From Octopus sinensis (taxonomy: Eukaryota), in the NCBI RefSeq assembly GCF_006345805.1, contig NW_021833335.1:1-27600 (forward strand): DNA of 27,600 nt, in the 5' to 3' direction. The translations under genes and the position numbers were made by a program. A model generated the notes under the pieces. It ran no database searches and had not been told where the DNA came from. It saw nothing but the letters and a program-made list of their open reading frames with translations. Shown here piece after piece: positions 1 through 27,600 of the stretch (positions are counted from its first letter, which is position 1; every line of letters starts with the position of its first letter).

Positions 1-234
1 AACGAATGACAGAAAGGGAATCCTACCCTTTCTGGTCACATTACTAATTAAAAACTCTTCATCGGCGATGAGAATCATCTCCCACCTCCACCTCTTTGCA
101 TACAGAAAAAACTGTAATGAGATTTGTGCTTAAAAACATTGATATATTACTTTAAACGGAGTTGTAGTTTTAATCTGTCAGACTTTTTATTTAAATGTCG
201 AAATGCATATAAATATCACACTAATACAAAGAAA

Positions 235-560
235 CTAATTAATTGTTTAACTAAGTCCCAAGCTTTTGAAGTGAACAGGGAGTGGTACTTTTTCCTCCTC
301 CTCTTCTCTGGCTCTGTAGACCTCCGAGGATATGCAGTCCAGCGTTCATCGCTGAATAAATGTCAGGAAAAGACTGGAACCCCGGAAGACTGAGGAACAG
401 TTTAATATCGACTATGAATATGAGATGATTAGTGCTATAACATTTCATTATGCTCGATCGACATTTGTTCGAATTAGACAGTGAGGACTCTGCTTAGTAG
501 TTCTAGGCACACGACAAACAGCAATATGCTGTCGCTATGTAATGTGCTCCTCTCTAGCAT
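235..560 (-). mobile_element. Internally deleted RLE-type (R4/Dong-like) non-LTR retrotransposon relic: RT motif fragment joined directly to the element 3' end
   Basis: The minus strand gives NHLIFIVDIKLF (RT FxDD-region variant). 384-560 aligns by eye with 4310-4490, and 235-390 with 3393-3570. It is therefore a shorter deletion derivative of the 3393-4647 element. Confidence 0.75.
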
Positions 561-589
561 TTGTTGTATTGTAGATGCACTTTGGAAAG

Positions 590-2067
590 ATATTTGGTCT
601 AAAAGAACCAATACCTGTCAAAATGAGAAAATGAAACTTGCCAGTCAGACAAACTGGGCAGAATCTGATATATTCTCTGTTAGTCAAGAACTTTTCGAAG
701 ATGTTATAAAATATCTTCCAAATTGGAGATCCTGTGGCTGCGACAGGGTGTATAATTTTTTCATTTAACATTTCGAATCTTTACATCCGTATATCTATAC
801 TGAAGTCTTAAAAATTTGTAAAGAAGAGTACATACCGAACAATTGGTTTTACACTGGGATTACTTACCTCATCCCAAAGAAGCCTAACTCGAATCTGCCA
901 AAAGACCTCAGACCCATAACATGCTGCCAAACCTGTATAAAGTTCTCACTAAACGCGTAAATATGAAATTAACAAATTATTTGGAATTTTATTCGCTTGT
1001 TTCGGATAATCAACTTGGATGTAAAAGAAAATGTCAAGAAGCCAAAGAACAGGTCTTGATTAGCAAGAGTATAAACCTGGCCTACAGAAACAATTTGTTT
1101 ACATCCTTGATAGATGTGAAGAAAACTTTTGATAGTGTGGATCATAACTTTCTTTATCACGTTTTGGACTGCTCTTGGATCACCAGGTTCGTAAAAGTGA
1201 TTTTGACCCAGTGAAAGCTGAAGCTCAACCTGAACAAAAAAATAATCGGAAAAATTTGAATAAAGTTTGGGACCCTACAGGGAGATGCTTTATCTCTACA
1301 GTTATTTACGCTTGTAATGGACCCATTGAGCCGATGAGATGATGGAAAAAATAAGTGCAAAGATCAAAGCACGTATAAAGAGACTAACAGGCACAAAACT
1401 GAATGGTATTAATCTCTTTAAAGCTTTGAATGAGCACGCTTTGTCCCTTTACAATTATTACATTGGATTGATAGACATAGAACCTGATCAGTTTGAAGTA
1501 ATTGACAGAGAAATTCGTCAACAACTTAATTCATATCACATACACTTGAGACCTGCAAATTGTCAGAGGCTATATCTCCCTCGTACATACCTTGGAAGAG
1601 GATTGGAATCAATATCGATGAAGAGCGAAAGAATGTTACTGGAATTCTATACTGACATAAAAAAATCGGAAGGCTGTCTGAGAAAGGCTGGTATTCTGCG
1701 GACTGAAAATTTAATGAAAACCCATTTGGACACCATCGCAGACTACTTAAAGCATAAATACACCAAATATAACAATGAAATCAACATAAAAAATTTAAAG
1801 GAAATTCAACTCAAATACCTTCTTGATATAATCGAAACAAAAAGTTTACATTCATCACTTTACAAATGCAACAAAAACATTCATTCCGATATTTTTGTGG
1901 TTGCAGGAAGGCAATATATGCCCAAGTAGTGAGGGTCTATATTGCTTACTGCAAGATAGAAATCTGTTCTGTCAAAACGAAATGTAAATTGTCCGGAAAA
2001 ACTCCACAAATACGACCTACTTGCAAGTGAGATCGGACTGTTGCATAGTGCCAAAGTACAAATTTTT
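590..2067 (+). mobile_element. Degenerate RLE-type non-LTR retrotransposon (R4/Dong-like; RT plus C-terminal remnants), with stops, frameshifts and internal deletions
   Basis: Motifs in order: LPNWRSCGCDRVYNFFI, GITYLIPK..DLRPIT, NLYKVLTK, QLGCKR, IDVKKTFDSVDH, LQGDALS..LF, NLFKALNEHALS, RLYLPRTYLGRGL, LQDRN, then EKLHKYDLLASEIG (RLE tail). The YxDD, zinc-knuckle and PD..D segments are deleted. Left boundary approximate. Confidence 0.85.
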
Positions 2068-2400
2068 AATGATTACGAATTAACAGTTAAAACAAACGAA
2101 GTGCGCCCTTGTAATAAAAAAGAAGTAAATTTGCAAAAATTGCCATATCAATTTCTCATTAAAAATTTGAACAAAAAGTGCCCTTATCTCATGTGGATTG
2201 TGATGTCGAATTCGTTTCAAATCACCAATCCAACCGAACTTGCAAGAATGTGGGGGGAGTTGAAAGGCAACCCTAAGATGACGGTTGACAAGTTCAACCG
2301 CGTCTTAAGGTTGTATTACAACAACCCCAGGATCTTAAAAAGAGAAAAAACACAAAAAAACACCTACACTTTTTATTATGATGTCCCTTATCAATCTACT
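2068..2400 (+). pseudogene. ETS DNA-binding domain gene fragment (copy 1), inside ORF 2041-2571
   Basis: PYQFLIKNL..YLMW...FQITNPTELARMWGELKGNPKMTVDKFNRVLRLYY..ILKREK..TYTF matches the ETS pattern (LwqFL, W, P.E+AR.WG..K..P.M.Y+K+.R.LR.YY, Y.F). Confidence 0.85.
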
Positions 2401-2445
2401 GAGGAATATACCCCTTACTACTCGAATGCATATGAGCCCCCACTG

Positions 2446-2927
2446 ACTGAAAATCAAAACCACTTTGGAAAAGATATATTCATACTTGTTGATGAAACGG
2501 AAATCAATAAACAGAAATTTGTTAATGTTCTTTGTGGGACTATTGAAAGTCCTGAAAAATTTATTTATTAAATTGTTTGGAAATTGAAATTTGTGATGCA
2601 TCTGCAATTTGTAGAATTGTGGATGACACAATTCGAATTTATGATATAAAAAGAAAAATTTTTTTATTATTTATTTCTGATGCTGCCCGTTATATGACTT
2701 TAGCAGCGAGTACATTGAAGGTTATGTATATTAAAATGATTCATATAACTTCTTTTGCTCATCTTCTGCACAATTGTGCATTAAAGATTAGAGCACATTA
2801 TAAATATATTGACGACTTAATCTCGTCTATCAAAATGTCGATTGTAAAAAATCCCTCCCGGAACTTTTTTAAGGTCATATTTCTGGTTGCCCTAGTAATG
2901 ACTAGTTGGTCACTTGATCAAGAATGA
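2446..2927 (+). mobile_element. hAT-like (DUF659-type) DDE transposase fragment
   Basis: KDIFILVDETE..FVNVLCG (first catalytic D), then after a stop FLLFISDAARYM (second D) and AHLLHNCA (CxxH-like), continuing to SIVKNPSR. No TIRs found. Confidence 0.7.
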
Positions 2928-3392
2928 GGCTCAAACGAATTCAACGGGAAAATATAATTTAACTTGTAATGGAAATTTGAAATTATTGTCATACAAATAC
3001 AACAACAATAGCCGACAAGTCCATTCATTCAAGTTATCAAAATATGGCAAGACAAAATTACTTCTCACGTGAAAAATCTGAGGATCTCGGAAATAATACT
3101 CAAAAAAAACTTGAGAAAATTGTATCAGTACCATCACTGTTCATAATGTTTATCAGAATTTAAAAATGTCTTCATATCAATTGTTTTAGAAAAAGAAAAG
3201 ATTTGAAGAACCAATAAACATAAGAATAATGATTAGTGATAAATAAAGAATGAAAATAATTCACCATAATGAAAAAATATTTACAAATTAAATAACAACT
3301 GCTACACCACAAAAAATACAAATAAAAGTACACGTGTGAACGTATGCAGAATTAATTTTGTTTTATTAATTTATATTGATAAAAAAAAGAAA

Positions 3393-4647
3393 CTAATTAA
3401 CTAAGTGATTTTTATAGCTAAGTCCAGAGCCTTCGAAGTGAGCAGAGGGTGGCACTCCACACATTTCCTTCCCTTCTTCCTCCTCTTCTCTGGCACTGTA
3501 GACCTTCGAAAAGGTGCAGTCCAGCGCCTTTCGCTGACTAAACGTGATGGAAAGGACGACATTCCAGATCCTCAATATCTTCAAAATGGAAGTGGTGGAT
3601 GTTGTCGAGTCTTTTACTCACGTATTCGCATAGTTGTATTGCACAATTTCAAATAATATTAACTTCAAATTGATTTGCAAATTGTTAGAATGGACGGATG
3701 ACCTCGACTTGAGAGTAGGTATTGTCTAATTGGTAGATTGTGATCATTTCCTTAAAAAGCAGATCTGCAACATCCCCAGCAACAACGGAAAGGACAATTT
3801 AATAAATCACATAACAGCCACAATCCACACTTCCTTCCCAGAAATCGAGGACTTTTACAAGGACTTTGCCACCCTCGGGTCGGTGGTGAATGACTGTGGT
3901 TTGTTGGATTTGTGATATCTCAGGACTGCAGCAATTTTTATGATTCTCTCGGAGTAAACTTCGGACAATAAGGTCCATTTCATCACTCGGTTCCAATTCG
4001 ATCAGACCAACCTATCGCGTACTCGCAATGAGATGGCGTACTCGTTCAAGGCATGAAATAAGTTCCGTGCATTGAGGCAAGTTTTACATAACATTGCCGC
4101 CCTACTACGCACACTTTCTCGTTTCGGGTGTGATTAATGAGGCTGGGCTCTCAACCACACCAAGATACTTATACCCTTGGTGTTCCTCCAAGACTTTGAC
4201 TAGGTCACCGCACACAGGGGTGTTAGTCGCCGACTTGTTGTAGTTGAGCTCCAGCCCCAAGGCTTTCATGAAACCTTTCAAGACTTTGCCCATCGAGTGG
4301 AGGATCTCTGAAGACCGAGCGAACAGTTTAATGTCGTCTATAAACATGAGGTGGTTGGTGCTAAAACATCCTCCTTCATGTTCGATCGACATTTGTTAGA
4401 ATTGGGCAGTGAAGACTCTACTCAGCGGTTCTAGGCAGAGGACAAACAGCAGCAGAGACATGCTGTCGCCCTGTAATATGTCCCTCTCTAGCTTCACCTC
4501 GCCTATATCGCATTTGTTGTAATGTAGATGCACGTTCCACCTGTCCATCACTGTTGAAACAAATTTGAGAAAACCATGGAGGCAACTTAAGCCTTCGCAG
4601 ACACTCAACGAGGTAGGCATTACCACAGAGAGAAGGTGTAAATTCAT
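3393..4647 (-). mobile_element. 5'-truncated, internally deleted RLE-type (R4/Dong-like) retrotransposon
   Basis: Minus-strand frames give ILQGDSMSLLLFVLCLEPLSR, NHLMFIDDIKLFA, GLELNYNKSA, YKYLG, NARNLFHALNEYAIS, GLIELEP and a C-terminal VLSITFSQRKALD..EEEEE. It ends at CTAATTAA. Confidence 0.85.
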
Positions 4648-4653
4648 TTATAT

Positions 4654-4980
4654 TTAATAATTACGAGTTTACCTTCAAAACAAACCGGAATTGACGCCGT
4701 TTTAATTAAAAAAGACGCGAATTCGCAAAAATTGCCGTAATTTACGTCTCCACGAACAATATAAATACGTGCTGTGCGTTCTGCGGATGACAATTACTAC
4801 TTGGAAATGAAGACTTGTTTATACGAATTTCTTATTGAAAACCTAAACAAGAAGTGTTCGTATCTCATGTGGATTGGGATGTCGAATTCGTTTCGCATCA
4901 CCAATCCACCAGAACTTGCAAGAATGTGGGGGGAGTTGAAAGGCAACCCTAAGATGACGGTTGACAAGTTCAACCGCGTC
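4654..4980 (+). pseudogene. ETS-domain gene fragment (copy 2), truncated within the recognition helix
   Basis: LYEFLIENLNKKCSYLMWIG...NPPELARMWGELKGNPKMTVDKFNRV. Nucleotides ~4915-4980 are identical to ~2235-2304, and upstream homology extends to ~4654/2064. Confidence 0.85.
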
Positions 4981-5418
4981 ATCTCCCAGATCCCTCCCAA
5001 CAACGACGACGTCCTCACTAAGAAGGCCTCGGGGGAAGTCTCAGGACTTGTCCGGACTCTCCGTTGCTGTAGTACTGTCGGGTGAGACTGCAGTGAAACC
5101 CAGGATGGTGGAGGAGTTGAAAAGACTGATATCCCAGCAGCAAAAGAAACTAAAAATAGACGGACTGTTTGCCTAGTACATTATGGTCTGGAGTTGGCTG
5201 ATCTGAAAGTAAAATATTTTGAAATGCAGCAAAAGTATAATGATTTGGAAAGAAGGGTCAATTTAGTGGTTTAAAAGTGATTTTAGTATAAACAAATCAA
5301 TGTCTGCTGAGAAAGCAGGGAGGGTTGTGAATGTGAGTGAGATTGAAGGCTTGAATGTTAAAATCAGCATTATGATTGAGGAGCATAATAAATTGAAATC
5401 TGTATTGATTAGTGTCTA
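4981..5418 (+). other. Possible host-gene fragment (coiled-coil-like, possibly with a ~30-nt intron)
   Basis: Reading segments VEELKRLISQQQKKLK, ELADLKVKYFEMQQKYNDLERR and EIEGLNVKISIMIEEHNKLK, plus a candidate GT..AG at ~5257-5286. No clean gene model is possible. Confidence 0.3.
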
Positions 5419-5772
5419 AATCTGCCAAACACTCTTTGAGGAGATAGATTTGTAAAAAATTTCAATTTTGTAAATTCTCATCGAGCCTCACAAAAACATC
5501 AAAATTCATTGAGTTTAAGCGATGTAACAAATATTTTTTAAGATAATCTGACTGAATTGCAACAAACACACATTGAACAATATATAAATAAATGCACATT
5601 GAACAATATTCCAAAAATGATGGCTGGGCTCTACAAGTAACCAGAGCATTTGTAAAATCTGATATTCTATTAAACAAACTATCTATGCCGTGGTTTGGAA
5701 AATTTTATTACGCAGGCTCTGTACGAGTTCCCTCACCATTAAAGGCTAGAAGTTGTGTCGATCAAATCATAA

Positions 5773-5813
5773 TATGTCGCGAGCGCAGCGCGCGACCGAG
5801 CGCTAGACGCGAC
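5773..5813 (+). repeat. Left copy of a ~40-bp GC-rich inverted repeat (TATGTCGCGAGCGCAGCG...)
   Basis: Near-exact reverse complement of 9986-10026 and 14424-14464. It contains GCGCAGC units and has TA at the outer edge. Confidence 0.85.
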
Positions 5814-6261
5814 TTTGACAGCTAACAAGCCTATCATCAACAAATATATTTATTAAATTATTTAAATTTTAACATGATTTAAAATAAAATTGAAATAACT
5901 AAGTTTTCCATTGAATCCCATATAAAATAATTTATAAGTAGACCTTAATAGAAAAAGTAAAATCAATGAATACTGAACGCTAATTTGTTTAGGTTGTGAG
6001 GGGGGGTAATAATTGACAGATCTCATTGTTATTTTTCGTTTTAATCTCTAAAATTAGGTCTTCTAATCAAAAATGAACTGTGCTGACAGGCGTGCTCCTT
6101 CAGAAGATTCTTGTTTTGACATTTTAATAAATTATGAAGCATTTAGATTTTTCTCATTATTCTAAAATATCAATTATAAATTTTAAAATATTATTTTTAT
6201 TTATGAAATCGGTTTTAAAGCTCATTTGCTTTGGCATCGATTTTAATTTTTGTTATCGAAT

Positions 6262-6295
6262 ATATTTAATCCCAAATACAATCTAGGTATTTGTC
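6262..6295 (+). ncRNA. Putative spliced-leader (SL) RNA gene, 5' part (leader exon + donor), interrupted by LINE insertion
   Basis: ...TTTAATCCCAAATACAATCTAG|GTATTTGTC: CAAATAC (6273-6279) pairs with GTATTTG (6287-6293) around a 7-nt loop, putting an AG|GT donor at the stem. The reconstructed continuation has an Sm-type GATTTTT(T)GA. The 5' end is a guess. Confidence 0.55.
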
Positions 6296-7200
6296 GTCCT
6301 TTAATATTCTAACCAAATCCGAGACTGCACAGAAGGCCCGAATTACTGCCAGGAAGTCTGGGGACTTTACCCTCGAATTCTCAAATTCTAGTGATAGGGA
6401 CTCGTTTGTGAATGACTTCGAGTATAACAAACCATTTGGCCAGGACGGCCATTATATTTCTGCGTGCAGTCTGCAACCATCGACCGTAGTCTTGAAGGGA
6501 ATACCATCTTGGGTCTCCGAGGAAGACCTGGATCTTTACCTCAAAGAAATTCTCAACCCCGGTTTTACTTTCCAACGGTTCTACAAAAATGGACGGAGTA
6601 TACCTGTTGGAAAGTTGAGTCTGAATTCGAGGGCAGAAGCCACTTCGCTTGTAAGGATGGGAATCGAAGTGGGATTTCAAAAAATACGATGCGAATGGTT
6701 TAAAAACCCAGCAACAAGATGCTTTCGCTGCCAACAATTTGGTCACATTGCTAACTTCTGCAAAGAAGTGGAAAGATGTCTTTCTGTGGTGGTGATCATA
6801 ATATGAAAATGTGCCCGATTAAAGGAAAAACTGAGAAAAATGTATAAACTGCGGTCTGAGTGGGCATTTGGCTTGCTACGGTGGCTGCTCTTCAGCTAAG
6901 GCAGCCACTGAACAACTAAAAAAGCAGCTCAGTGCCAGGGACAGACTGGCCAAAGCAGAACACTCAAAAACTGTATGGTCAAAAGCGGAGGCCGTTGAAT
7001 CTGTATGGCGAAAACCCACAATTTCCCGCTGTTTGACTCCTCAACGCAAACAGATGTTAGTGAAGACGCAACTTTGCCTCCCAATACACAACACACAGAG
7101 CCTCCAACCCGCTTTAAGAGGAAAGCACCAACTATCGACGTTGAGCTTACCTCTATGATTCGCAAAATAATCGCTATATGCGATGAAAAAGGCTCGATAT
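6296..7200 (+). CDS. LINE-A ORF1, nucleic-acid-binding protein with three zinc knuckles (N-truncated, frameshifted)
   Basis: VVLKGIP, CFRCQQFGHIANFC, then across frameshifts C..CGGDHNMKMC and CINCGLSGHLACYGGC. No ATG at the 5' junction. Confidence 0.8.
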
Positions 7201-9813
7201 CAACAATCTGTTGTCCCTTTCTCTTGGAAGGGAAAGGATTGATCAGGCGTGAGGTAAACGAAACAAAAATCAAAAAACATGATGATTACTACTTGATGGC
7301 TATCGTTCCCTTGATATTAAGTGGAAGCCGGGCTCGATCGCTGGAACAGGCACTTCTATCTACTACAAATCAACTCTAAGGGTGAAAAATCTAAAAATTG
7401 TGTCCGAGGAATTGTGTGAATTCCTCACAATCGACGTCCTTCTGGAAAAAGGGTGGGTAACAATCGGAGGGATGTACTCAAAATCCCTTTCCAATTATTC
7501 ATCGCTTATCAAGGACTTTTTTGCCGATAAACACAATCATTTGTCAATACTCCTCGGGGATCTAAATGCCAAATGCACATCTTTGGCTGTCTGAGAACCA
7601 ACAGGGATGGCATCATTCTTAAGAAGCTTTCAGAATCTCTCAGTTTCTCGGTCATCACATCAAAAACCCCAAATCATTACTCACCAGGAGGGTGGGACTA
7701 TTTGGGCGTAGCATTGGTCTCTATGTCTACTCTTCAATTTATGGAACAACCGTACACCTTAAATGATATTGGAAGTGACCATCTACCAATTTTATACAAA
7801 CTCAACCTTGGACCTTTAAAGGGTAAACCAACTTTTATACGATATAACCTCTCGACTATAAACTGGGAACACTACCGAAAATGTTTTACACTTTATCTGA
7901 GCAATTTCGCTCCTAAACTTGACGAAAATTCTTCATCTGAGGACCTCGAGAAGTCTAGCAATTCCCTTATTGGATACATAAAGTCTTATCTGGAAACATA
8001 TTCTACAAAAATCGTCTCAAACAATAGGAAAACTCACATGCCAAACATGAATGTTGAAATCCTACTAAGGAAAAAACAATGTCTAAGGAACAAACTCCGG
8101 CGCTGCGCAGATTTTCGTGACCGGTCCGTTTTGGAAAGTGAAATCTTCACCATTACGGAAGAAATAAGAAAATCGGCGAAGGTGGCGAAGGATAAAAATG
8201 GAATACTGAGTGCAAAAAGCTACATAAAGGAAGTCCAAATTTTTGGAAGGTCTACTCGAAATTAACCTCGACGTCTGAGAAAACTATACCTAAACTGCTA
8301 AAACAAGATGGATCCCCTGCATCTCATGAAGAAATCCCGAACATATTTGCTGATAGTCTCAAAAGAATACAAGAAGTCAATCCGGATACAAATCTATCTG
8401 ATTCAGCTTTGTTTGATATGGAAAAAGAGTTGGAAGACAATCTTAGCTCATTACCAATGTGCTCGGAATCTATAACGTGCAAAGACGTGGAAAATGCAGT
8501 TAGATACTCCAAAAATAACGCTCCGGGAAAGGACAAGATAACCATGCGCATGTTCAAAGAAGCTCCCAAGCAACTTTACGAATATTTGGGATGTCTCTTC
8601 TCCCGCAGTGTGAGCTTGGGATACGTCCCTTCTTCATGGAAACTGACGGAGGTAAGGATGATACGGAAGCCTGGAAAACCTGGTTACTTGGCGACAAGTT
8701 ATAGGCCTATAAGCCTAATTCCTACCATCAGTCGAATAATGGAAAGGGTAATGTTTGAACGACTCTCTGAACACGTCGAGAGAAATGGTTATCTCAAAGA
8801 CGTGCAGTGGGGCTTTCGGAGGGGTCGTTCCTGTGCTGACTGTCTTTATACACTCAATTCGTCGATTGTAAAGGCTCTGGATTTCAAAGAGTGTCTGACA
8901 ATTGTGTCTCTAGACATCTCAAAAGCCTTTGATATGGTTTGGCACCTCGGTCTCCTTAGACATCTGGCGAAGTGTCACATAGACAAAGGACTATTCCTAT
9001 GGCTAAAAGACTTCCTCCGCGACAGGCGCTCTGTGATAAGCTTTCTGAACTATGACTCGGATGAACTGAAACTTAAAAGAGGCGTCCCTCAAGGATCAGT
9101 CCTCAGTCCTCTATTATTCAACATTGTGATGAGCAATCTGCCGTCTCCTGTCAACACACGGACGGAAATTTTGATATACGCCGATGATGTTGTAATCCTT
9201 GACATTTCATCGAAACCTGCCTTATCCGAACAAAGGATTATATCATATATGAATACAGTGGAGCAATGGTGCGATGAAAATATGTTCATTATTGCGCGTG
9301 AGAAGTCCGCATTACTGAGAATCACAGAAAGAAAGCAGAAATTTAATAAATTTACCGTGCCTGATCAAGAACATACCTCGACAAAACTCAATTAAATATC
9401 TTGGCTTGTTCATCGATGAAAAGGGAAACTATCTCGAAAACGCAAAATTAAGTAAAAGGAAAGCAACTAATGCTCTGTTCTGCCTGAGGAAGTTAAATTT
9501 GGAGCCTGATACTTTCCTCTACGTTTTCAATACGGTGATCCTACCGGGACTACTATACGGAAAAGAGGGATGGTACTTCTCTAAAAAGAAGGACACCATC
9601 TTAACTAAATTTGAAAAGTCTCGCAGGCTCGCTTTGAAGCTTGCTTACCACCAAAAAGTTGAAGATCCAATCCCCCTGTGGCTTGAAAGTAAATCCTCCA
9701 TGGTCGGTGAAACTGTCGAAAAAGCTATAAGTGGTTATAAATCCAACTCAATTGTCACTGGGACGTACCTGCAGGGAGAAAAAAAAAAAAAAAAAAAAAA
9801 AAAATTTACTTGA
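7200..9813 (+). CDS. LINE-A ORF2, APE endonuclease + reverse transcriptase (several frameshifts)
   Basis: VNETK, WKPGSIAGTGTSIYYK, GDLNAK and DIGSDHLP (APE). APGKDKI, YRPISL, QWGFRRGRS, LDISKAFDMVWH, GVPQGSVLSP and YADD (RT). No RNase H seen. Confidence 0.92.
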
Positions 9814-9933
9814 GGGGGTCTTTTTTTTTTTTCTGGGAAGAAGTCGATAGGGTAGTCCTATTGTTTCATTATACAAACTCCCCCCTAACCTTTAACCCTT
9901 CTCTGTTTCCAATAAAACTTCCTATTCCTATTC

Positions 9934-9965
9934 CTAGGTATTTGTCAATTTATAGATTTTTGATT
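9934..9965 (+). ncRNA. Putative SL RNA 3' part (donor + Sm-type site), copy 1
   Basis: CTAG|GTATTTGTCAATTTATAGATTTTTGA, with GATTTTTGA at 9955-9963 fitting the RAU(4-6)GR Sm consensus. Confidence 0.5.
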
Positions 9966-9985
9966 GATCGGATTGAAATTGAGTG

Positions 9986-10026
9986 GTCGCTCGCTGCGCT
10001 CGGTCGCTCGCTGCGCTCGCGACATA
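9986..10026 (-). repeat. Right copy 1 of the GC-rich inverted repeat
   Basis: GTCGCTCGCTGCGCTCG tandem unit ending CGCGACA-TA; reverse complement of 5773-5813. Confidence 0.85.
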
Positions 10027-10231
10027 TAGATCAAAAAATTTTTAATCCAGCAAAACTTGTGTATAAAAATTATTTTGTAATAATCAAAAGTTTTTTGCAA
10101 TGCAGATGAACAAAAATTACGTTGCGTGATGATAGCATGTTAAATTCTTCTGAAATAAATATGATATCGTTTAAGGCGATATATTTAAGGCGATTATAAA
10201 TATTGTAGCGTGCAAGCATGGTCGTTTTCCT

Positions 10232-11615
10232 GTGATGCGCAAAAATGGCAATCTTAAAGCAGAAGAAAAAAGGGGTGTGCAAAGCCATCCCGAACAGAAG
10301 GGGATGCGTAGAGAACCTGCTCAGGTAGCCCATGAGGACGGCTGGCGTACCGTTGGGAAACCTAAACGTGTCGCTTGCCGTCCAATTTCTAACAACTTAG
10401 GTTCTCGCAATTCGTCTTCGGAGATGGATCCGCCGTCGAAGAAGACCGCTCGCGTCGGGGTAGAATTACCTTCGGCGTTTGTAGCACGACTAGAGGTCTT
10501 TCCACCTGTGGAAAAGGCCTCAGTCGTTAAATTTTTAGGCTTGGACTCGATACAGCCGTCTAAGCGGTATCGAGTTCTGAAGAGGGAGCACTCAATTCCT
10601 GCTGGGGGGAGGAGAAGTCTGAGGACTTTTTCAGTTTCGAAAGGGAGCTGGAAAAGTCATCCCGTTCGGTCCTGGCATGCATCGGCTTGTCAGGTTCGAA
10701 CGCAAGGTAGGGCAGGTAAGAGTCCTCCTCCTTGGGGTCCCCCGGGACTTTGAGGATAACGACCTTTTAGAGCACCTGCAGCGGGAGTACCCCAGTACCT
10801 CTGCCATTGCACGCTTCAAGCAAGGTTATCGGCCTCTTGAAGTGGTGGAGGTTACGCTGGGATCTCCTGCGGAAGCCGAGCGCCTCATACTGCTGGGTAC
10901 GAGGGTCGGCTACGTTAGGCTTCGTGCTGTCCGGCCCCGCCCGAAAGCCACCCAATGCTTTCGGTGTCAGGGTTTCGGGCACATAAGCACGAGATGTCCT
11001 GAGAAGGCGAAGTGCTTGACCTGCGGTGGCGAGCATGGTCGCAAGGCATGCCCCTCGCCACCTACGAAGAGGTACTGTGTCAACTGCGGTAAGTTGGGAC
11101 ACAGTGCCAACTTCAAAGGTTGCCCCAAGTTCAAGGAGGCAACCCGAAAGGTAGGTGCGGGTGTAATCTCGAAGGTAAGTCGCGCGGCTAGCGTCGCAGT
11201 TACTGGGCCACAACCTGGCAAGCGGGCAAAGCAGTCCAAACCACCCAAGACTGTTTCGGTGGCGAGGCCTGTGAAGCCTGCAAGCCACATTGCGAGCGAG
11301 TCGGTACCACCTTTGCCGACAAAGTCGGCTGAGCCGCTAATAACATCCGAGTCAGTTCGGATGCCGAAGCGTGCTAAGCCTTCAGAGTGGGCTACAGGTG
11401 ATACCGCCCAGCAAAACCTAGGGGGGAAAAGGCGTCCTCCATACGTGGAAATGCCACCGCACTCCCCCCCTGGCGAGCGTGCTCCCCAGGACACCATTAG
11501 TCCTGAGGTGCAGTTGTGTGTGCGCCTACTAAAATTATGCAGGGCGACGAAGTGCAGTGTAGCAGATATGCTACATTGCAACATGGCTGAGGCCAAGAAG
11601 ATCCTTGGCGAGTAA
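10232..11615 (+). CDS. LINE-B ORF1 (gag-like, three zinc knuckles; one frameshift near 10600-10680)
   Basis: VLLLGVPRD, CFRCQGFGHISTRC, CLTCGGEHGRKAC, CVNCGKLGHSANFKGC. The start codon is uncertain (10235 or 10304). Confidence 0.88.
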
Positions 11616-11620
11616 CCGAT

Positions 11621-14199
11621 ATGATGCTCAACATTATATCGGTGAACGCGCGCTCCTTGTCCGGTAAAGGAGACGCCGTTCAGAGGATGTTGGCCACCAC
11701 GAGTGCGGACATTCTGGTGGTCAACGAAACGAAGGTAAAGGGGGGTCCGTACGTAGTTGATGGCTACAACTGTTGTCACATACCCTGGAAACAGGGGTCA
11801 ATATGTGGCACGGGAACTAGCCTGTTCTACAAGCCGTACCTCGCCTTGCAAAGTTCAGGTTTATGTTCTTGTAGCCTATGCGAATTCCTGCAAGTAAGGA
11901 TTCGTATAGGTAACCTACATTTTACCTAGGGGCGATGTATTCGAAGAACTTTACGGCGTGTTCCTGGCACGTACGGGAGTTCTTTGGAAAGCATCCGAAG
12001 GCGATGGTTGTTGGAGACCTGAATGCCAAGCACATAGAGCTTGGTTTCAGGGTAACCAACGCGCATGGTTTGGCTCTGAAGACGCTGGTTGAAGACCTCG
12101 GGCTGGAAATCCGGACTTCAAGTGAGCCAAACCACATCGATTCGCGAGGCGGACTAGACTGGCTAGGGCTTGCTTGCTGGTCAGTCCTGGAATGCTAAAT
12201 TGGGTTAGTAAAACAATTTTATTGCCCGATATTGGAAGCGACCATCTGCCTCTATTGCACGAACTCCGCGAGCCAGTCCCTCAAAGGGTTCCGGGATACT
12301 TCGACCTCCGGTCGGGTTCTTGGGCCAACCTGGAGAGGTTCATGGCCAGCAGGTTGCCCTCACTTCTGGTGGGGAATACCTGTGCCAATATACGTGAGTT
12401 GGAGGCGTTAGATAATGGAATCAATGCTGCCCTGACTGATTATATGCGAGATAATTTCAAACAGAACTCAGTGCAGGGTAAGTCACATTCCATGCTGCCA
12501 TACCGGGTCTTAAATAAAATTAGATTTAAGCGCCGGCTATCCAGACCGGGACAAATGCGTCTACGAGGAAAACCGTGTTGGTTTCGCGCTGGATTAGCCG
12601 GCTTCAGAGGGAGATCAGAAGAGAAATCCGCGAACTTGAAAGTTCACGGTGGGAGCGGGCCTGCAAAAGAGTGGACCCGCGCTTTCCGGACTTCTGGAAA
12701 CAACTGAAGAGCCTGTCGGGGAGAGGGGAGGCAAAGTCAGTGCGCCTTAAGCGCTCTGATGGAACCCTCGCCTCGGACCCGGTTGAGGTGGCTGATATAT
12801 TTTCAACCCACCTCAACAACATCTCGGGAACTGACGGAAGTCAGTTCGTCGTAGAGACGTCGTCTTTGTTACTATCCAGGAGGTATTGTCTTGGGACAAG
12901 CGCTGCCAGCTGGACATATCAAGGGTCGATGCAGGCGAAGTTTCCGAAAGGGAGATCCTGGCAGCGATCTCCCGAAGTAAGAACACCGCGGCGGGGCTAG
13001 ATCGGATCCCTATGTCCATCTTCAAAAAGGCCCCGCCGTTGTTGATCACGGCCTTACAGGTTTTGTTTAGCGGGAGCTTGCGACTTGGGATGATTCCTTC
13101 CAGGTGGAAAGTGGCTGAGGTAATCCTCATTGGAAAACCTGGGAAGCCTCATGATGTCCCCGGGGGATACAGGCCCATTTCCTTGCTTCCCGCTATATCT
13201 AAAATCCTAGAAAGGATCATGCACCGAAGGCTCCTGGAGGAGCTGACGGTGGTTGACGCCCTCCCGGAGTTCCAATGGGGATTCAGGGAGGGTCGTTCAT
13301 GTGGAGACTGCTTGTGGAAGGTGTCTTCCGAAATGAAGAACGCCCTCCAGAAAAGGGAGTGTGGTATGTTAGTTAGTCTTGACATAGAAAAGGCCTTCGA
13401 CTCGGTGTGGCACGACGGCCTGCGGAGTTCCCTCGCCACGTGTGGGGTTTCTCCGTGTCTAAGGCGCTGGCTGTCGGGGTTCCTCGAATCTCGCGGTCAG
13501 GTCGTGCGACACCAGGGGGTCTTTTCTAAAGTCGCAACAGTCCTTCGCGGGGTCCCTCAGGGTTCTGTGCTGAGTCCCACACTGTTTAATATCTTTATGC
13601 CCTCTGCACCTATGCCAGTCAATGCTCGTACTGGAATGGTGATCTATGCAGACGACATTATCCTCTGGGATCAGTCGATGAAACCAGAGTGTGCGTGTCG
13701 TAGGCTACAGGTTGCTGTGGATGAACTTGTAAACTGGTGTGGGAGTAGGGGTCTAAAGATGTGTGCGGACAAGTGCAGTGTCCTTAAAGTCTGTAAAAGG
13801 ACGAGGGGTTACACTAATTTTATCCCTAGGTTATCGCTGGACGGGTCAGCGATCGCTGTAGTTGATCGGACAACTTACTTGGGCGTGGTCTTCAAGCAGT
13901 CAGGTAAGTTCGATGATCACATTGCACGTACTAAAATGCGTGCAATGCAGCGATTAGGCGCGTTGCGTGCTTTCCACTTGAGGAGAGGTGCCTGGTTCCG
14001 TGTGTTCAACGCCATGGTGTTACCCGTGTTAACCTATGGCGTGCACGCTTGGCACTTCTGCGAGGACAGGGAGGAGAAGTACGTTGACGCGCTTAAGAAA
14101 GTAAGAAGACGAGCCATCCGGCTAGCCTATGGCTTAGGATGGCGTGATGAGCTCTCCACACCCAGGAATTGTCCCTCAAAGGCCTCCCTGAGGTCCTAG
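11621..14199 (+). CDS. LINE-B ORF2, APE endonuclease + reverse transcriptase (split by ~4 frameshifts, possibly sequencing errors)
   Basis: SVNARSL, VNETK, WKQGSICGTGTSLFYK, GDLNAKH, DIGSDHLP. Then GLDRIP, YRPISLL, QWGFREGRS, LDIEKAFDSVWH, GVPQGSVLSP, YADD, YLGV. Confidence 0.93.
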
Positions 14200-14368
14200 A
14201 GAAGATAATGACTGGGTGGCAGGTAAGACGGTAAGTCCTAACCTGTGGTTGTGTAGAGAGGCGAGCGTGTGTGCTGGACCGAAAAGGCAGGAATGCCGAA
14301 GGTCTCCTTATGTTACCTCACTAACAGCCTCTCTAACTAATTATTTAAAATAAAAATTTTCCTTCCTT

Positions 14369-14628
14369 CTAGGTATTTGTCAATTTATAGATTTTTTGAT
14401 TGATCGGATCTAGAAATTGAGTGGTCGCTCGCTGCGCTCGGTCGCTCGCTGCGCTCGCGACATAATAGATCAAAAATTTTTAATCCAGCAAAAACTTGTG
14501 TATAAAAATTTATTTTGTAATAATCAAAAGTTTTTTGCAATTGCAGATGAAACAAAAGATACGTTGCTGTGATGATAGCATCGTTAAATTCTTCTGAAAT
14601 AACATATCTGATATCGTTTAAGGCGATA
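14369..14628 (+). repeat. ~260-bp direct repeat (right copy), including putative SL 3' part (Sm-type site 14390-14399) and inverted-repeat copy 14424-14464
   Basis: Colinear with 9934-10181. Confidence 0.92.
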
Positions 14629-18800: not shown

Positions 18801-18924
18801 ACTAGTTTTTCTACATTTTTTAAAAGTGCAAACGTCACTTAAATTCCTCGTGACATCATCAAATAATTTCCAAATTACCCATAAAACCAATAATTTAAAA
18901 TAGTAAATATAATTTAAAAATAAA

Positions 18925-20027
18925 TTAAATCCCCTTCTCTGCCCCTCCATTCTAAAATAAAGTCAAGAAATAACCAAAGTGAATTCTTCGTGTTTGAGTC
19001 CCCTCAGTCTAACAATCTCTGCCCGAGCCTCCTCCAATCTGGCCCTCAACACATTACAGTCTCGTGACACTTCCTCAAACTGCTCCAACGCCTTTCCGTT
19101 CTGAGAATTCACATCAATTTCTCTGCCGACTCTCTCAAGTTCCCTCATCGTATCTTCCAAACAAATTTGAACGCGATTCCTGTCGTTCGTAAGCTGATTC
19201 ACCGCACATGTCAACTGCTCAACCTTTATCTCCTTAGCAGCCAATTTGTCCTCCAACTGCTCACATTTCTACCACAATAATCCACCAGACATACTTCAAT
19301 TAGGCTTATTCCATCCCCACAATTGGCCAGTCTTTCCACCGTGTTGTTAGCCACCACCAACTTTCGGTTTGTCTCCGTGATTTCGTCTCTCAACACGGAC
19401 ATGAGTCTCTCAGTCCTGGCAGCAATGTCATGTCCGTTGTAGGCCAATGCGGACTTGTATTTGTCCTCCAATTCACGATTTTCCGCCTTTAATTTGCTGG
19501 TCACAGCCAATAGTTCTTCCTTGGGGGTCACCTCCTCCAGTTTTTTCCGTAAAACGGAGACCACGGATTCGTGTTCGGCCTCATTATGCCGAAGAGCGGA
19601 CTCCAATCTCTCCACTTTGGTCTCCAATGTACAAATCTGAGCTTTGAAGGATTCTTCCAGTCCTTTAATGCTTCCATGGAGGATTTCAGCTCTTCTTGAG
19701 CGTTGGCCAGTCTTGTTCGTAGAGAATTTATTTCCTCGACCACTACTTTGCAATGATTGATCTACTTTTGCTAATTTCGATGTTTTTCTCAGCCAGTTGA
19801 CTTTCGGTGTCTGTGTTCTCTACGGGCAATGGTGGTGATGGCTCTTCTTTGTGGGTGTTCTTGGCTTTTTTTCGCCGTTTTTGATTTTTTTTGACAGAAG
19901 TTGACTGACCTGGATTTTTTTTGCTACAAGATGTTAATGTAGACTAATACAAGATGAGGAATGTTATCGGGATAGTAATCACGATTATTCCAATGAGTGC
20001 TAGAACTAGGTTTAATTCTATTTCCAT
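18925..20027 (-). CDS. 5-exon host gene, ~334 aa: N-terminal hydrophobic anchor, Lys-rich linker, long coiled coil (kinectin/RRBP1-like architecture; orthology not established)
   Basis: ATG at 20027 gives MEIELNLVLALIGIIVITIPITFLI. GT-AG introns at 19950-19924 (27 nt), 19765-19743 (23), 19294-19269 (26) and 18974-18952 (23) join the ORF-track frames. One 1-nt frameshift is needed near 19665. Stop TAA at 18927-18925. Confidence 0.75.
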
Positions 20028-21019
20028 GGTTTTCTATGAAATATTGATAAAATTGACACACACGAGAAACGTACAGCCAATGCTTTAATAAAATTTATTT
20101 TTATTTTTTTCATAATGAAAATAAAATTAATAATTACAAATATCCATTTAAACGTCTTTATCAAAACATGGATTATTTTGTTTCATAACATACATTTCTT
20201 AGTATTTTACATACTTTTTTTGTCAGATTTTTATTTGTTTCAGAGAAATTTTGCGCTTGTTTTTTGTCTATGTCTAATAAAATTAAATGAGTGAACATGT
20301 GCTTATTTCATTAATTAAACAATATTTATTTTCATGCTATTGAGTTTCAATATTTTTATGAGAGCACTTCAGCATAGCTGAGGCACGTAAGTGCCTAAAA
20401 TACAAACATGCAAACTACAAAGTTTTTACAAGACCAAGAGAACAAGTTAATCAGAATTAATAAAAGTGAGGTCAGAAATATATTGAGATTCATTATTTAA
20501 GAATGAGGCAGTTTAGAAAATTAGGGCGAATATTTGAATACGAATGTTGATTAACGAGGCAAAATTGATATTGTGATTCACAATAAGATTACTGTGAAGA
20601 TTATATTTTTTAAAAATTGTAAGTAAAGAAACTATCATTTAGTTTACGTCATTGTTTGACATTGAACCGATCGATTATTAAATGGGCAATCTTATATAGG
20701 TCCCCCATAAGCATTCAAATGTCTTTTAAAGGACTCTGGAAGTGTTTTGTGAGTCATTTTTTGAGATTTACCAAGTCTTCGGCTTGATTCGATCCATTTA
20801 TAAAAAAGATAATTTATTCAAAATATCACAATCAAGTACAAAGGCCAGATAGTAGCAGAATGACCACTCCCTGTGATATTGACATATCGAAATGGAAATT
20901 ACTTAAAAAAGTCCTTAGATAGAAGTGTTTCTTACTTTGAAATGGGCATTGCTCAATACATTTCCTCATTAGAGCGGTTCAGGTCGCTTAGTCACTAGAT
21001 AGGAATGAAGATAGGAATG

Positions 21020-22163
21020 GAGATTCAATAGAGTGCACTGCATCATCGATTGCAAGTGAAAAGAGGAGGGGCCCGAGCGGGTCTCCCTGCTTAACTCCTG
21101 TCTGGGAGCGGACGATTTCGTTAACAAAGATGAGCGTGCTCTCCTCGCCGTAGGATAGAAAAACCAAATGGGCGATTTCCGGAACTTAAGCGGGGACATA
21201 CGATCCTCGAGGCCAATCTAGCAGCCAGGCGACAGAAGTAATTTCCAACTGCTATGGGACGGGTTCCGCCATTTCTCTTCCGGAATGCAAGTAGATGTGC
21301 TGAGAAGACTATGTTCCTCGCATAGTAGGGGATATCCCCGTTCAGTATCTTACCGACTAAAGCTGCTATAGCGGATATCAGAGAGTTGCCTGCCTCGCCA
21401 TTTGAGGAAGAGGTGAGGTCCTTGATGTGGCCCAGGCGGAGGCCATCAAGTCCGCCGCAGCTGCTTTTGCCAAAAGATTAAATTGAGAACTTAATTTCAT
21501 CTTCCGATGGGTTGAGCGTGCAAGACACAGATGGGCGAGTAAGAGGCCGCAGATCAGAAGGAGGATTCTGGGTGTTTGGATCTCAGGTGGGCAAGGACAG
21601 TAGGGGTTGGTTTTAACACTGTGTCGTCGTTTGAGACTGTGCAAATGACAGCCCGGACGTCACCCTTGGCTAGTTTGGCACGAACACGATCATTCAGGGT
21701 GTCTTCAAAACACTGTGGGGTTTTCTTTTTGTTATTTGAGGAGTGCTTGCGATCAACATCGGGAAAGGTTGTCATTGAGTGCGAAGAAATTCTGTTGATG
21801 TTCTCTTTAATCAATTCTGCGAGAGGAGGTGGATTTTTCCTAGTGCGGATGGGAGTTCCGAGAGTCAGTGGGGCAAAACTGATTAGACGGGACCATGCTT
21901 CCCAACTGTTGGACGTGAGCGTATTGTTGATGAAGGAATTAAGACATTTGGAAACTTGTATCCTTGCTGACTTTGGAATGCAAAGGGGGATTTTCAAAGA
22001 ACTTGGACAATTTGATGAGGAATGAGTTGACATCCAATTGATGAGCACTAGCACTAGTTGGCTCTTTAGAGGGTTCAGTGGAACCAGGGAGTGGGATGCA
22101 GTTCAGGAGAATGCATGAGGGGCACGCCCATTTTGTGAAGGCAGATGCAATTTTTTTACTCAA
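21020..22163 (-). mobile_element. CRE-type RLE retrotransposon, inverted 5' segment (pre-RT region and RT motifs)
   Basis: Minus strand: KLAKGDVRAVI..LRSKHP, GGLDGLRLGH, LLAFRKRNGGTRPIAVG, GVKQGDPLGPLLFSLAI. It stops just before YLDD. Confidence 0.85.
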
Positions 22164-22169
22164 CTTGAC

Positions 22170-23285
22170 ACAGTAAAGGTGGAAAAAGCGGCTGCATCAA
22201 AAGCAGCGGATACCGTTTTTCCCGGGACAAAAGAGGTTGGACGCAAGCAAAACCTCCCGTCAGGTTTGGAGGGATCGGTATTCGCTCGCCTAAAGATCTG
22301 GCGCCACACGCACATTTCTCTTCAATTTCCAGAAGACGTCAACTTGTCCGAGAGGTTCTACTCTCCTTCAACAAACTCTCTCTGGAGTTGGCAACTGTCG
22401 ACCTCCTGGATTTCTGGACCAAATCTGGAGTTTATATCCTATCTGAGATGTCCAGACAGAGGGATTGGGACGAGATCTGTGCAGCACATTCGTTCTCTAC
22501 GCTCAAACCGGCCTTGGACCAACACAGCAAAGCGTGCTTGTTTGCTGCAGCACACAAGCATAGCGGGTCCTGGCTTGGCTTGACGCTCGACGGGTTCCCT
22601 ATTAGACAACGAAACACTGCGTATTGGGGTTTCTTTTCGGCTGAGGCTTGATGTCTGCGCCCCTCATCCCTGTCGATGCGGAGGTACGGTGGACGTGAAA
22701 AACTTTCACCCCCTCTCCTGTTGCCGGAGCGCAGGCCGCTCGCCCACCATGGAGCAATCAACGACGTAATCTCAAGAGGACTCAACGCTGCTGGCTTCCC
22801 CAATGTGCTAGAACCAGCCGGATTGGACAGAGAGAACGGCAAACGCCGGATGGGATGATTACCTTCCCATTCCGGAATGGAAATTGCTTGATCTGGGATA
22901 CCACGCGTGGAGACACGTGGCCCCCATCCGCCTTGCTCTCATCTGCTTTTTCTTCCGCCTCGGCCGCGACTTTGGCAAAAGCTCGCAAAGTAGAAAAGTA
23001 CAAGAATCTTGCCACTCGGCATTCCTTCGTGCCTGTGGTTTTTGAGACATCAGGCGCTTCCGGTAACCTCATGCTTCATAAAAGATTTTGGAATCCTCAT
23101 TGCTCGGAAGAAAATGGATGCTCGCGAGTCCTCTTGGTTGAGTCAGAGAATCTCGCTCGTAATCGTGTGCGGGAACGCGCAAGCAATCCGTTCGGCTGGG
23201 CTATTACTCCTGAAAAAAATTGTTATGTTGTTCAAAACTCGACAGTTCATATCCATAATTTTCTCATTTTTCAAATGAATAAATC
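22170..23285 (+). mobile_element. CRE-type RLE retrotransposon, sense 3' segment (thumb, zinc knuckle, restriction-like endonuclease)
   Basis: [58 protein letters not shown](P)DGM, LIWD, KVEKY, FVPVVFETSG, WLSQRISLVI..GNA; AATAAA at 23278. Confidence 0.88.
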
Positions 23286-24779
23286 TAATTAGTGATTGTC
23301 TATTTTGAATCCTTACCCACAGAGTGTCTGTGGATATACAAAAAAGCAATCACAGCTGGAACTCCAGCAGTAAGAAAATTATTAAAAATAATTCAATCTG
23401 GGTTGGCTTGACCTGTTTTTTTAATTTTGAATAATTGCATAATTAACTTAATAATCACTAACCATTAAATTTTACATGCTTTTAACATCTCTTAATTCAA
23501 GTTATTTTGAGTTAAATTACTTTTGTGCGTACTCTTGTCAACGAAATCAACATTTTAGTCAATTTTGGAACAAGACTCCAAGCGTTGCCAAAACCATTTT
23601 GTATAATATTTGATCGTGTTCAATTCCAGGCAAGATTTTCAGATTCAAATATTTTGATACATTAGACATCTAATATAAACGTGAATTACGTGGATATCGA
23701 CGCGTTTTCACGTATAGGCAGATAAAAACATTTTAAAATCTAATTCTAACAGTACAATAAAATGCCATTTTTAATCTCCCGAAATCAGAAAATACTCATA
23801 AATAAAAAGCTCATTTTATTAACTGACAAAAATATGAAAATGAATGCATTTCAAAATTGTAAAAGACAACTAATCATGGAAGAAGCATATAATGTGTTGT
23901 TTCCTAACAGTGTACTGCAACCTCTGTCTGCTTCCATTAAACAATTTTCAATTCAAAATGGAATGTGAATAATAAAATATTCGGATGACATTAATTAACT
24001 ACCCCGATTATTCATTCTAATATTTGAAACGGAACAATTCGTTTTTCTGAATTTCAGTGTAGTATAAATGGAGAACTCTTCGTCTTTTGATAAAATAAAT
24101 AGAACAGATCAAATATCGAATTCGACACGTCGGAATTTTGAAAGAATTTTTAATTTCATCCACTGATAAACTGACGTTAAGAAACAAGGAGGCGTTGTTT
24201 CTTAAACATACATCAAGGGTTAATCGGTTGCATGAAAAAATAATAAATTGACTGTGTGGAAAATACAAAACAAGAAGACAAGTAAAACGACCTTCTGGTC
24301 AAAAACTTTGAAATGGGAGGAAATATATATAATTTTAAGAAAAAGATTAGAGGAATAAATCGGAAAATATCACAAAAAATGACGAAATTTCAAATAAATA
24401 AATCACTAAAAGAAACTTCATCACGAGATATTCCTTCTAAATCCATTTTAATACAAAAATAAAGCAAAGCTAATTAATAGAGCAGTACAACAAACTAAAT
24501 AAACCGTATCTAGAAAGGTCATAATCTATTTGGTTTGCCATTAAAAATTAAGATATTTAAACAATAATTAATGAAAAATAGTTTATAATTATTATTGAAA
24601 TAATAATTTGTTTCTTTATTTAGTTTTTTTAATCGGTACTTCAAATTAAATTTTTCAAGTTCATTTTTTACATGCATAAATAAAATTATTTCTGAAATAT
24701 AAAATGCCATTTTCAGTCTTCGAAACCAATTTGATCAAAAATACTTCTTATTTAAGGCGTCGTGTCAAAAGTGCTTTCA

Positions 24780-25470: not shown

Positions 25471-25720
25471 CCGCTATGAAGGACTATTTCAAACCTGACG
25501 GCCCTCGTTTCAATGGACGTCAAAAAATACTTTCCTGGTTACAGTGGACAGAGACCTTCTGAGTTTGTGGAAAATTTAAAGTCCTAAATATGTAATCAAA
25601 AAAACAATAACAGATTTCTTTATTAATAAAAAACATAACTTATTTACTAAAATGTGTTTAAATTGTTTTTTATGGTTTGCCTAATTAAAGTTTTAAGTTT
25701 CACGGTGAAAGTGCGAGATA

Positions 25721-27319: not shown

Positions 27320-27600
27320 TATTTTGAAAAAATGATTTTTTGCGGTCAGTGTACAAGAAATAAAATCAATAAACTCGCTCTAGCAGGTTGAACACAGCTT
27401 ACCAGCCGTCAGTGTTGTCCCTTTGGCTTCTCTCGGATCCCTCTTGGATAAAAAATTACTAGATCAGACTTTGTCTCCGTTTGTGACTTGATTGTTTATT
27501 TTATTTATTGTATGAAAATTTGAGTGAAAGCAATCTAATTTTTTTTAAGGAACAACTCTGTAAGAATGTTGGTTTTGAATCATCACCTCCTAACATTCTC

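Follow-up and report, generated by a model that had tools for sequence, protein, structure and literature searches.

Background

Retrotransposons without long terminal repeats (non-LTR), or long interspersed nuclear elements (LINEs), that insert at particular sites have been described in several settings. Apurinic/apyrimidinic endonuclease-like (APE) enzymes of LINEs that recognize about 10 bp at the nick are documented, as is the nesting of a LINE in a DNA transposon, and recognition of roughly 10-13 bp would be in line with the endonucleases of TRAS1, Tx1L, and R1 (PMC1919474). Elements of the R1 clade are found in arthropods and are aimed at ribosomal DNA (rDNA), telomeric repeats, or microsatellites; CRE1/2, SLACS, CZAR, and NeSL-1 instead encode a restriction-like endonuclease, and the genes in which they reside are genuine spliced-leader (SL) RNA genes, in organisms that trans-splice (PMC4640811). 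Finally, R9 of bdelloid rotifers is reported to be a non-LTR element with a specific site, at which the second strand is cut far from the first, yielding target-site duplications (TSDs) of >100 bp (Gladyshev and Arkhipova, 2009, as cited in PMC5035012). Here, we examine a stretch of 27,600 nucleotides from Octopus sinensis (NCBI RefSeq assembly GCF_006345805.1, contig NW_021833335.1, positions 1 to 27,600 of the forward strand; hereafter the window), in which two related APE-type LINEs—LINE-A and LINE-B—end at the same base of a non-autonomous DNA transposon.

A shared 3′ junction

The 3′ ends of LINE-A (9933) and LINE-B (14368) both abut the same 13-mer, CTAGGTATTTGTC. Exact copies of this sequence number three across the window, all on the + strand (starting at 6283, 9934, and 14369), and the only other near-match, with 2 mismatches, is on the opposite strand. 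The first two copies flank LINE-A as a 13-bp TSD, and the third follows LINE-B, whose 3′ junction reads ...TTTTCCTTCCTT|CTAGGTATTTGTC. Placement of the junction is ambiguous by 1-3 nt: the final CTA of the (TTCCTA)3 tail of LINE-A overlaps the 13-mer, so that the LINE-A TSD is 10-13 bp long. The 3′ untranslated regions (UTRs) of the two LINEs are homologous over their terminal ~95 nt, right to the junction (score 35 vs a shuffle maximum of 34), which indicates that the true 3′ ends of both LINEs lie there. That two independent LINE 3′ ends would coincide at one base in 27.6 kb lies far outside chance expectation (a per-pair probability of at most ~1 in 10^4), and both copies in the window (2/2, one per family, at a single locus) use the shared junction. 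The common 3′ junction and the perfect TSD of LINE-A had been reported in a first-pass annotation of the window and are borne out by these exact 13-mers; as far as this one locus goes, the sequence-directed targeting that it proposed is also the most economical explanation for two LINE 3′ ends at one base.

Two independent events of target-primed reverse transcription (TPRT) by sister LINEs at one base imply a motif longer than ordinary LINE endonucleases read. We favor, with a probability of roughly 0.55, a reading in which LINE-A and LINE-B are sequence-targeted sister APE-type LINEs, each inserted at the same base of a miniature inverted-repeat transposable element (MITE) in a manner resembling Tx1L in Tx1D. 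The shared junction would then reflect a sequence specificity that holds family-wide.

The target is a dispersed MITE

The sequence that both LINEs entered is a dispersed, non-autonomous DNA transposon of ~600 bp. Its uninterrupted form was found at L007, one among four O. sinensis loci examined: positions 1135-1760 of L007 align end to end with window positions 5765-6295 plus 9947-10037 at 93-94% identity, and in the MITE copy at L007 1145-1749 both sides of the target are contiguous, with no LINE. The match between L007 and the window stops at 10024-10027, and the flanks outside the MITE differ and are not alignable. The element has the termini TGTCGCGAGCG...CGCTCGCGACA and GC-rich terminal inverted repeats (TIRs) of 29-37 nt, complementary at 31/32 positions in the window copy (left arm against 9996-10027) and at 34/37 in L007. 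Its 5-bp TSD differs by copy (the window copy has TAATA, that of L007 has TATTT on both sides), and it is the combination of TIRs with its own 5-bp TSDs in the uninterrupted L007 copy that identifies the target as a dispersed MITE.

The MITE is 599-605 bp long, with a left part of ~25% GC and no ORF of at least 70 aa within it, and the LINE insertion point lies 78-91 nt short of its right terminus. Within the target sequence that is duplicated around LINE-B (below), a GC-rich segment of 32 nt has an inverted copy at 5772-5803. Two MITE copies, at unrelated loci, were seen in about 110 kb sampled, making this a multicopy target. The site reads TCTAGGTATTTGTC in the window, corresponding to the variant CCTGGGTATTTGTC in L007, where the site is empty and reads AAGCCTGGGTATTTGTC. 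We also observed that the arms co-vary within copies—both window arms carry ...GACCGAGCGC (5775-5803 and 9996-10024) and both L007 arms ...GCACGCGAGCGC (1145-1181 and 1713-1749)—which suggests either distinct MITE subfamilies or selection for arm complementarity.

A long duplication around LINE-B

LINE-B lies between long direct repeats, which we call T1 and T2 and whose identity extends 248-260 nt beyond the junction. Starting from its 13-mer (9934-9946), T1 consists of the MITE right part to 10024, a decayed MITE TSD (10025-10028), and 153 nt of unique flank; the unduplicated flank begins only after T2 (past 14628). Both repeats have in common the right 91 nt of the MITE together with 153-161 nt of locus-unique flank, and the presence of this unique flank in both marks a local duplication bracketing LINE-B rather than two MITE copies. 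The alternative that T1 and T2 are tandem "target monomers" was ruled out: the repeat continues 154 nt beyond the MITE end into unique DNA, and what lies upstream does not constitute a monomer. The 11-nt repeat that fills the 5′ junction of LINE-B is missing from the junction between T2 and the flank. With the O. sinensis MITE of L007 as outgroup, derived changes are seen in T1 and in T2. Most simply, the 248-bp repeat would be a very long TSD of LINE-B, and TSDs of 13 bp and 248 bp at one site would mean that the position of the second-strand cut is not fixed.

If both insertions were sequence-directed, the endonuclease of each LINE would recognize about 10-13 bp around ...AAT|CTAGGTATTTGTC, and the bottom strand would be nicked opposite that junction. 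The reverse transcriptase (RT) would prime on the exposed 3′-OH, copying LINE RNA from the conserved 3′ UTR and short TTCC-type tail by TPRT. For LINE-A, a second-strand break 13 bp downstream would produce the 13-bp TSD around a 5′-truncated copy; for LINE-B, a break 248 bp downstream, beyond the MITE end in unique DNA, would produce a 248-bp TSD along with the 11-nt re-duplication at the 5′ junction.

Two sister families of APE-type LINEs

Both LINEs encode a gag-like ORF1 matched by Pfam zf-CCHC, and an endonuclease and RT in ORF2 (Table 1). Several frameshifts interrupt each, and both copies are now dead. A profile built from the endonucleases of LINE-A, LINE-B, and their relatives matches those of L1 (3.5e-19) and TRAS1 (2.1e-14), as well as APE1/ExoIII; the LINE endonuclease sequence alone had no match among PDB sequences. 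The E (NETK), D/N (GDLNAK), and SDH motifs are invariant, and the nearest PDB matches of the RTs are those of R2 and L1 ORF2p, equally. Neither the endonuclease nor the RT matches in PDB discriminate between clades. The Pfam RT and CCHC domains, the endonuclease profile, and the catalytic motifs thus agree with the earlier assignment of both elements as APE-type LINEs with gag-like ORF1.

The proteins of the two LINEs are colinear over ORF1, endonuclease, and RT, with an RT identity of 44.7% over 291 aa. At the DNA level almost nothing is shared—blastn returned a single matching stretch of 39 nt—and GC content is 41.5% in LINE-A vs 53.0% in LINE-B, so that they are, as first proposed, sister but distinct families. 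In a protein-database comparison that took in 5.8 billion proteins, the best relatives of the LINE-B and LINE-A RTs reached top identities of 39% and 43%, respectively; the two RTs are therefore nearer to each other than to any database protein. Within the 3′ UTR of LINE-A (9779-9832), a run of A26 is followed 16 nt on by T12, and the two could form a long A:T hairpin. The A26 is not a poly(A) tail, as its position is internal and 129 nt separate it from the true 3′ end.

Table 1. Coordinates of the two LINEs, their MITE target, and the duplicated segments in the window
Feature	Position	Strand	Description
MITE left TSD (TAATA)	5770..5774	+	directly before terminus TGTCGCG at 5775; recurs at 14463-14467 in T2
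MITE left 521 nt	5775..6295	+	left TIR 5775-5803; ends with upstream 13-mer 6283-6295; 94% to L007 1135-1668
LINE-A	6296..9933	+	5′-truncated, frameshifted APE-type LINE; exact 13-mer flanks, Pfam domains, colinear with LINE-B
LINE-A ORF1 remnant	6296-6806	+	CCHC knuckle; element begins within ORF1
LINE-A endonuclease	about 7230-8000	+	motifs NETK, GDLNAK, SDH kept
LINE-A RT	8409-9395	+	Pfam RVT_1, E 3.9e-38
LINE-A 3′ UTR	about 9720-9933	+	A26 9779-9804; AATAAA 9911-9916; tail (TTCCTA)3 9919-9936
T1, first copy of duplicated target	9934..10181	+	93% identical to 14369-14628
MITE right part	9947-10024	+	right TIR 9996-10024
Filler at LINE-B 5′ junction	10182..10194	+	TA + TTTAAGGCGAT re-duplicated (10170-10180 again at 10184-10194)
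LINE-B	10195..14368 (start approximate)	+	near full-length, frameshifted APE-type LINE
LINE-B ORF1	about 10245-11615	+	three CCHC knuckles
LINE-B endonuclease	11621 to about 12330	+	Pfam Exo_endo_phos_2 fragment, E 3.8e-5
LINE-B RT	12886-14199	+	Pfam RVT_1, E 8.8e-39
LINE-B 3′ UTR	14200-14368	+	AATAAAA 14348-14354; tail TTTTCCTTCCTT 14357-14368
T2, second copy of duplicated target	14369..14628	+	13-mer 14369-14381; MITE right part to 14462; intact MITE TSD TAATA 14463-14467; flank copy 14468-14628

Clade features and related elements

The domain organization of the two LINEs departs from that of several named clades. ORF2 of LINE-B stops at 14199, about 130 aa past the RT core, the homologous region of LINE-A ends at about 9720, and the ORF2 of a third related family found in L007 (LINE-C, 16755 to about 18100) stops at the same point as that of LINE-B. 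No Cys/His motif, a feature of the R1 clade, and no Pfam domain was found in the C-terminal ORF2 tails of LINE-A and LINE-B; nor did Pfam match an RNase H downstream of the RT, as in the I clade, LOA, Tad, Ingi, and Nimb, for which neither LINE has room. Jockey-clade elements have a poly(A) 3′ end and arthropod hosts. The 3′ tails here are (TTCCTA)3 in LINE-A and TTCCTTCCTT in LINE-B, with no terminal poly(A), and the host is an octopus. The three-knuckle gag of LINE-B is of the kind found in the Jockey, R1, and I groups. Tentatively, and with less confidence than we place in targeting itself, these features might describe a mollusc APE-LINE lineage outside R1 and Tx1—with a three-knuckle gag and a short ORF2 lacking a C-terminal zinc finger—that is strictly specific for one site of a MITE family, its target kept by two diverged sister families, one of which routinely makes TSDs of ~250 bp.

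The RT of LINE-C is 49% identical to that of LINE-A and 41% to that of LINE-B, and its 3′ UTR is partly homologous to that of LINE-A; the copy is 5′-truncated and begins directly after the end of a Tigger-like element. The nearest database relatives of LINE-A and LINE-B were considered as candidates for site-specific elements and rejected. Three of the metagenomic loci (L002, L003, and L005) represent one locus, with the TSD ACATCCTTGCA, and L004, a Joint Genome Institute (JGI) metagenome contig, contains two distinct LINEs in head-to-tail order, inserted elsewhere. These two L004 families (113-9266) are without DNA similarity and have 40% and 57% GC in surrounding DNA of 32% GC, a contrast between LINEs that matches the one in the window. 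The first is bounded by an 11-bp TSD, CTCGAGCCCGG, overlapping the 5′ end of the second, which has a (CATTC)n-type tail.

Weighing the explanations

Several observations count against sequence-specific targeting. The evidence base is one locus with two events, and in the sole further copy of the MITE that was seen the site is empty and altered at critical bases (CCTGGGTATTTGTC). RT protein searches revealed no further copies of LINE-B or LINE-A (nothing above 39% and 43%, respectively), exact 20-25-mers of the target had no match in viral, metagenome, or prokaryote genome collections, and the LINE-B RT had none among viral contigs. LINE-C is at neither the 13-mer nor the MITE, its 3′ end and TSD being undefined, and metagenomic relatives show TSDs of 7-11 bp at unrelated sites, those of the closest being an ordinary 10-11 bp. 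A TSD of 248 bp would be exceptional, and an earlier local tandem duplication remains an alternative. Finally, T1 and T2 differ by about 11 small indels and about 3 substitutions, an unexplained excess of indels that may stem from long-read consensus error, or else from indel-prone AT-rich DNA or real decay.

It is possible, though on the whole doubtful, that the two insertions instead reflect a local hot spot or coincidence, arising from a weak target preference of the ordinary sort combined with a fragile or favored spot (such as the 7-bp hairpin CAAATAC-N7-GTATTTG) or with a site that the first insertion had rendered attractive. The insertion site does fall within the loop of this perfect 7-bp inverted repeat, and the availability of a single locus, the unrelated sites and 7-11-bp TSDs of the nearest relatives, and the apparently low copy number of LINE-A and LINE-B, judging from the lack of close proteins in the O. 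sinensis annotation, would all suit such an account. However, as many as 52 hairpins of 7 bp occur in the window, so a hairpin alone cannot mark one base, and both insertions bear normal hallmarks of TPRT (a TSD and an intact 3′ end) that are usually lacking in endonuclease-independent insertion at breaks. Moreover, because the primer for TPRT is the DNA downstream of the nick, the tail of an earlier LINE upstream gives no priming advantage. An error of assembly appears improbable, in which mis-joining of long reads across repeats would account for one junction or for the whole T1/LINE-B/T2 structure. The differences between T1 and T2 are chiefly 1-nt indels in homopolymer-rich DNA, like those of poorly polished long-read assemblies, and the LINE reading frames are broken chiefly by frameshifts; yet a mis-join would yield neither a clean junction between the end of T1 and the 5′ end of LINE-B, with its 11-nt filler, nor a 13-bp TSD around LINE-A, and the derived changes carried by both T1 and T2 speak against it as well.

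Two further explanations concern the identity of the shared sequence itself. The first-pass annotation had allowed that the 13-mer and downstream DNA might belong to the elements' own 3′ UTR, and the same 248-260 nt, at 93% identity, does stand behind both LINE bodies. That the 13-mer and the following ~250 nt are a shared 3′ module of the LINEs, with no common host target, is nonetheless hardly credible, given that the 13-mer also stands directly upstream of the truncated 5′ end of LINE-A, where it marks a TSD; that in the uninterrupted O. sinensis copy the sequences upstream of 6283 and downstream of 9946 are contiguous, LINE-free MITE DNA; that the final 154 nt of the repeat are unique flank beyond the MITE; and that coding regions 45% identical are incompatible with an inherited tail 93% identical.

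The same annotation had taken the target to be an SL RNA gene, entered 4 nt upstream of its splice donor by SL-gene-specific APE LINEs. The insertion point is indeed followed by a donor-like AG|GTATTT and, some 21 nt downstream, by an Sm-like AGATTTTTGA, after which come a GC-rich hairpin and a T-run, and this combination of donor and Sm-like motif was found nowhere else in 19 kb of background DNA. But the supposed gene sits in a dispersed element bounded by TIRs and TSDs, the two copies of which agree evenly (93-94% identity across ~600 bp) without any RNA core that is better conserved, and the exon end is not kept (TCTAG|GT in the window vs CCTGG|GT in L007). Sm-like motifs such as AGAUUUUUGA are common in AT-rich DNA and number 59 in the window, and the proposed RNA does not fold better than shuffled sequences do (z = -0.75 and -0.57). 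Rfam gave no match for the interrupted copy or the window and, on the intact L007 copy, an irrelevant best E-value of 0.11; no match turned up among published SL sequences, those of copepods included. The host, moreover, is a mollusc, a group for which SL trans-splicing is not reported: molluscs are absent from a published list of trans-splicing taxa (PMC7986045), and our literature search found no paper tying SL trans-splicing to cephalopods. (A LINE ORF at 1339-1929, unrelated to LINE-A and LINE-B, has protein matches that are all from O. sinensis, the best at 89% identity.) An SL RNA gene as the target is thus very improbable, and with it falls the proposal that APE LINEs came to target SL genes independently.

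Surrounding sequence

The rest of the window is rich in other mobile elements. Fragments of another non-LTR family occupy 583-2064 and 3366-4650, with 93% DNA identity to O. sinensis copies, and it was this family that pointed to an octopus as the host. A further O. sinensis locus, L006, was considered as an orthologous locus and ruled out, having only transposon segments in common with the window. At 2041-2927 and 4774-5085, in two repeats that are 90% identical, an ORF with an Ets DNA-binding domain (Pfam E 2.7e-16) runs into hAT-transposase-like sequence; this may be a transposase with Ets swapped in as its DNA-binding domain, or a captured exon. ORFs of the pogo/Tigger type (DDE_1), with perfect 27-nt inverted repeats and 16-nt tandem repeats inside the ends, were found at window 25718-27322 and at L007 15883-16746, the L007 copy being 68-78% identical to that of the window. 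A GC-richer block at 18900-23300 (45-52%) contains minus-strand coiled-coil ORFs and several ORFs without a Pfam match and is probably another retroelement. The Ets, hAT, and pogo/Tigger ORFs fit an animal genome that is rich in transposons.

Comparison with known systems

CRE1/2, SLACS, CZAR, and NeSL-1, to which the SL interpretation had pointed, share with the octopus LINEs nothing but the non-LTR type and a preferred site, the octopus target being a MITE, and its host one for which trans-splicing is not known. The R1 clade (R1, TRAS, SART, and relatives) has several features in common with them, among them the APE endonuclease, three CCHC knuckles (in LINE-B), a precise 3′ junction without poly(A), a TSD of about 13-14 bp (in LINE-A), and the ability of several lineages to share a target. 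It differs in that the octopus LINEs have a mollusc host and a MITE target, and an ORF2 that ends about 130 aa past the RT core without a Cys/His motif.

For the duplication around LINE-B, a precedent is R9, likewise a site-specific element with an exceptionally long TSD, reportedly about 126 bp. R9, however, has a restriction-like endonuclease and is found in 28S rDNA, whereas LINE-B is of the APE type, its 248-bp duplication has been seen once, and its sister LINE-A made a TSD of only 13 bp at the same site. Should the 248-bp duplication be a TSD, it would have a bearing on the positioning of the second-strand cut.

The nearest parallel to the arrangement as a whole is Tx1L in Tx1D of Xenopus laevis, where an APE LINE is likewise found at a defined nucleotide within a TIR-bounded, multicopy, non-autonomous DNA element. 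The specificity of Tx1L is documented genome-wide and biochemically, whereas that of the octopus LINEs rests on one locus. By analogy with the Tx1L and TRAS1 enzymes, recognition of about 10 bp at the nick would be expected of the octopus endonuclease (PMC1919474). The clade is probably different from that of Tx1L, since the octopus LINEs have a three-knuckle gag, no C-terminal zinc finger in ORF2, and a TTCC-type tail; the octopus case also differs in its mollusc host and in the presence of two sister families on one site. Should the specificity prove real, the locus would represent a cephalopod "transposon inside a transposon" comparable to Tx1L/Tx1D, with two sister LINE lineages on one target, and a third animal example of APE endonucleases gaining long recognition sequences. 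It probably adds one more case to an established type, the APE LINE with a specific target that nests in a DNA transposon, and is of specialist rather than general interest.

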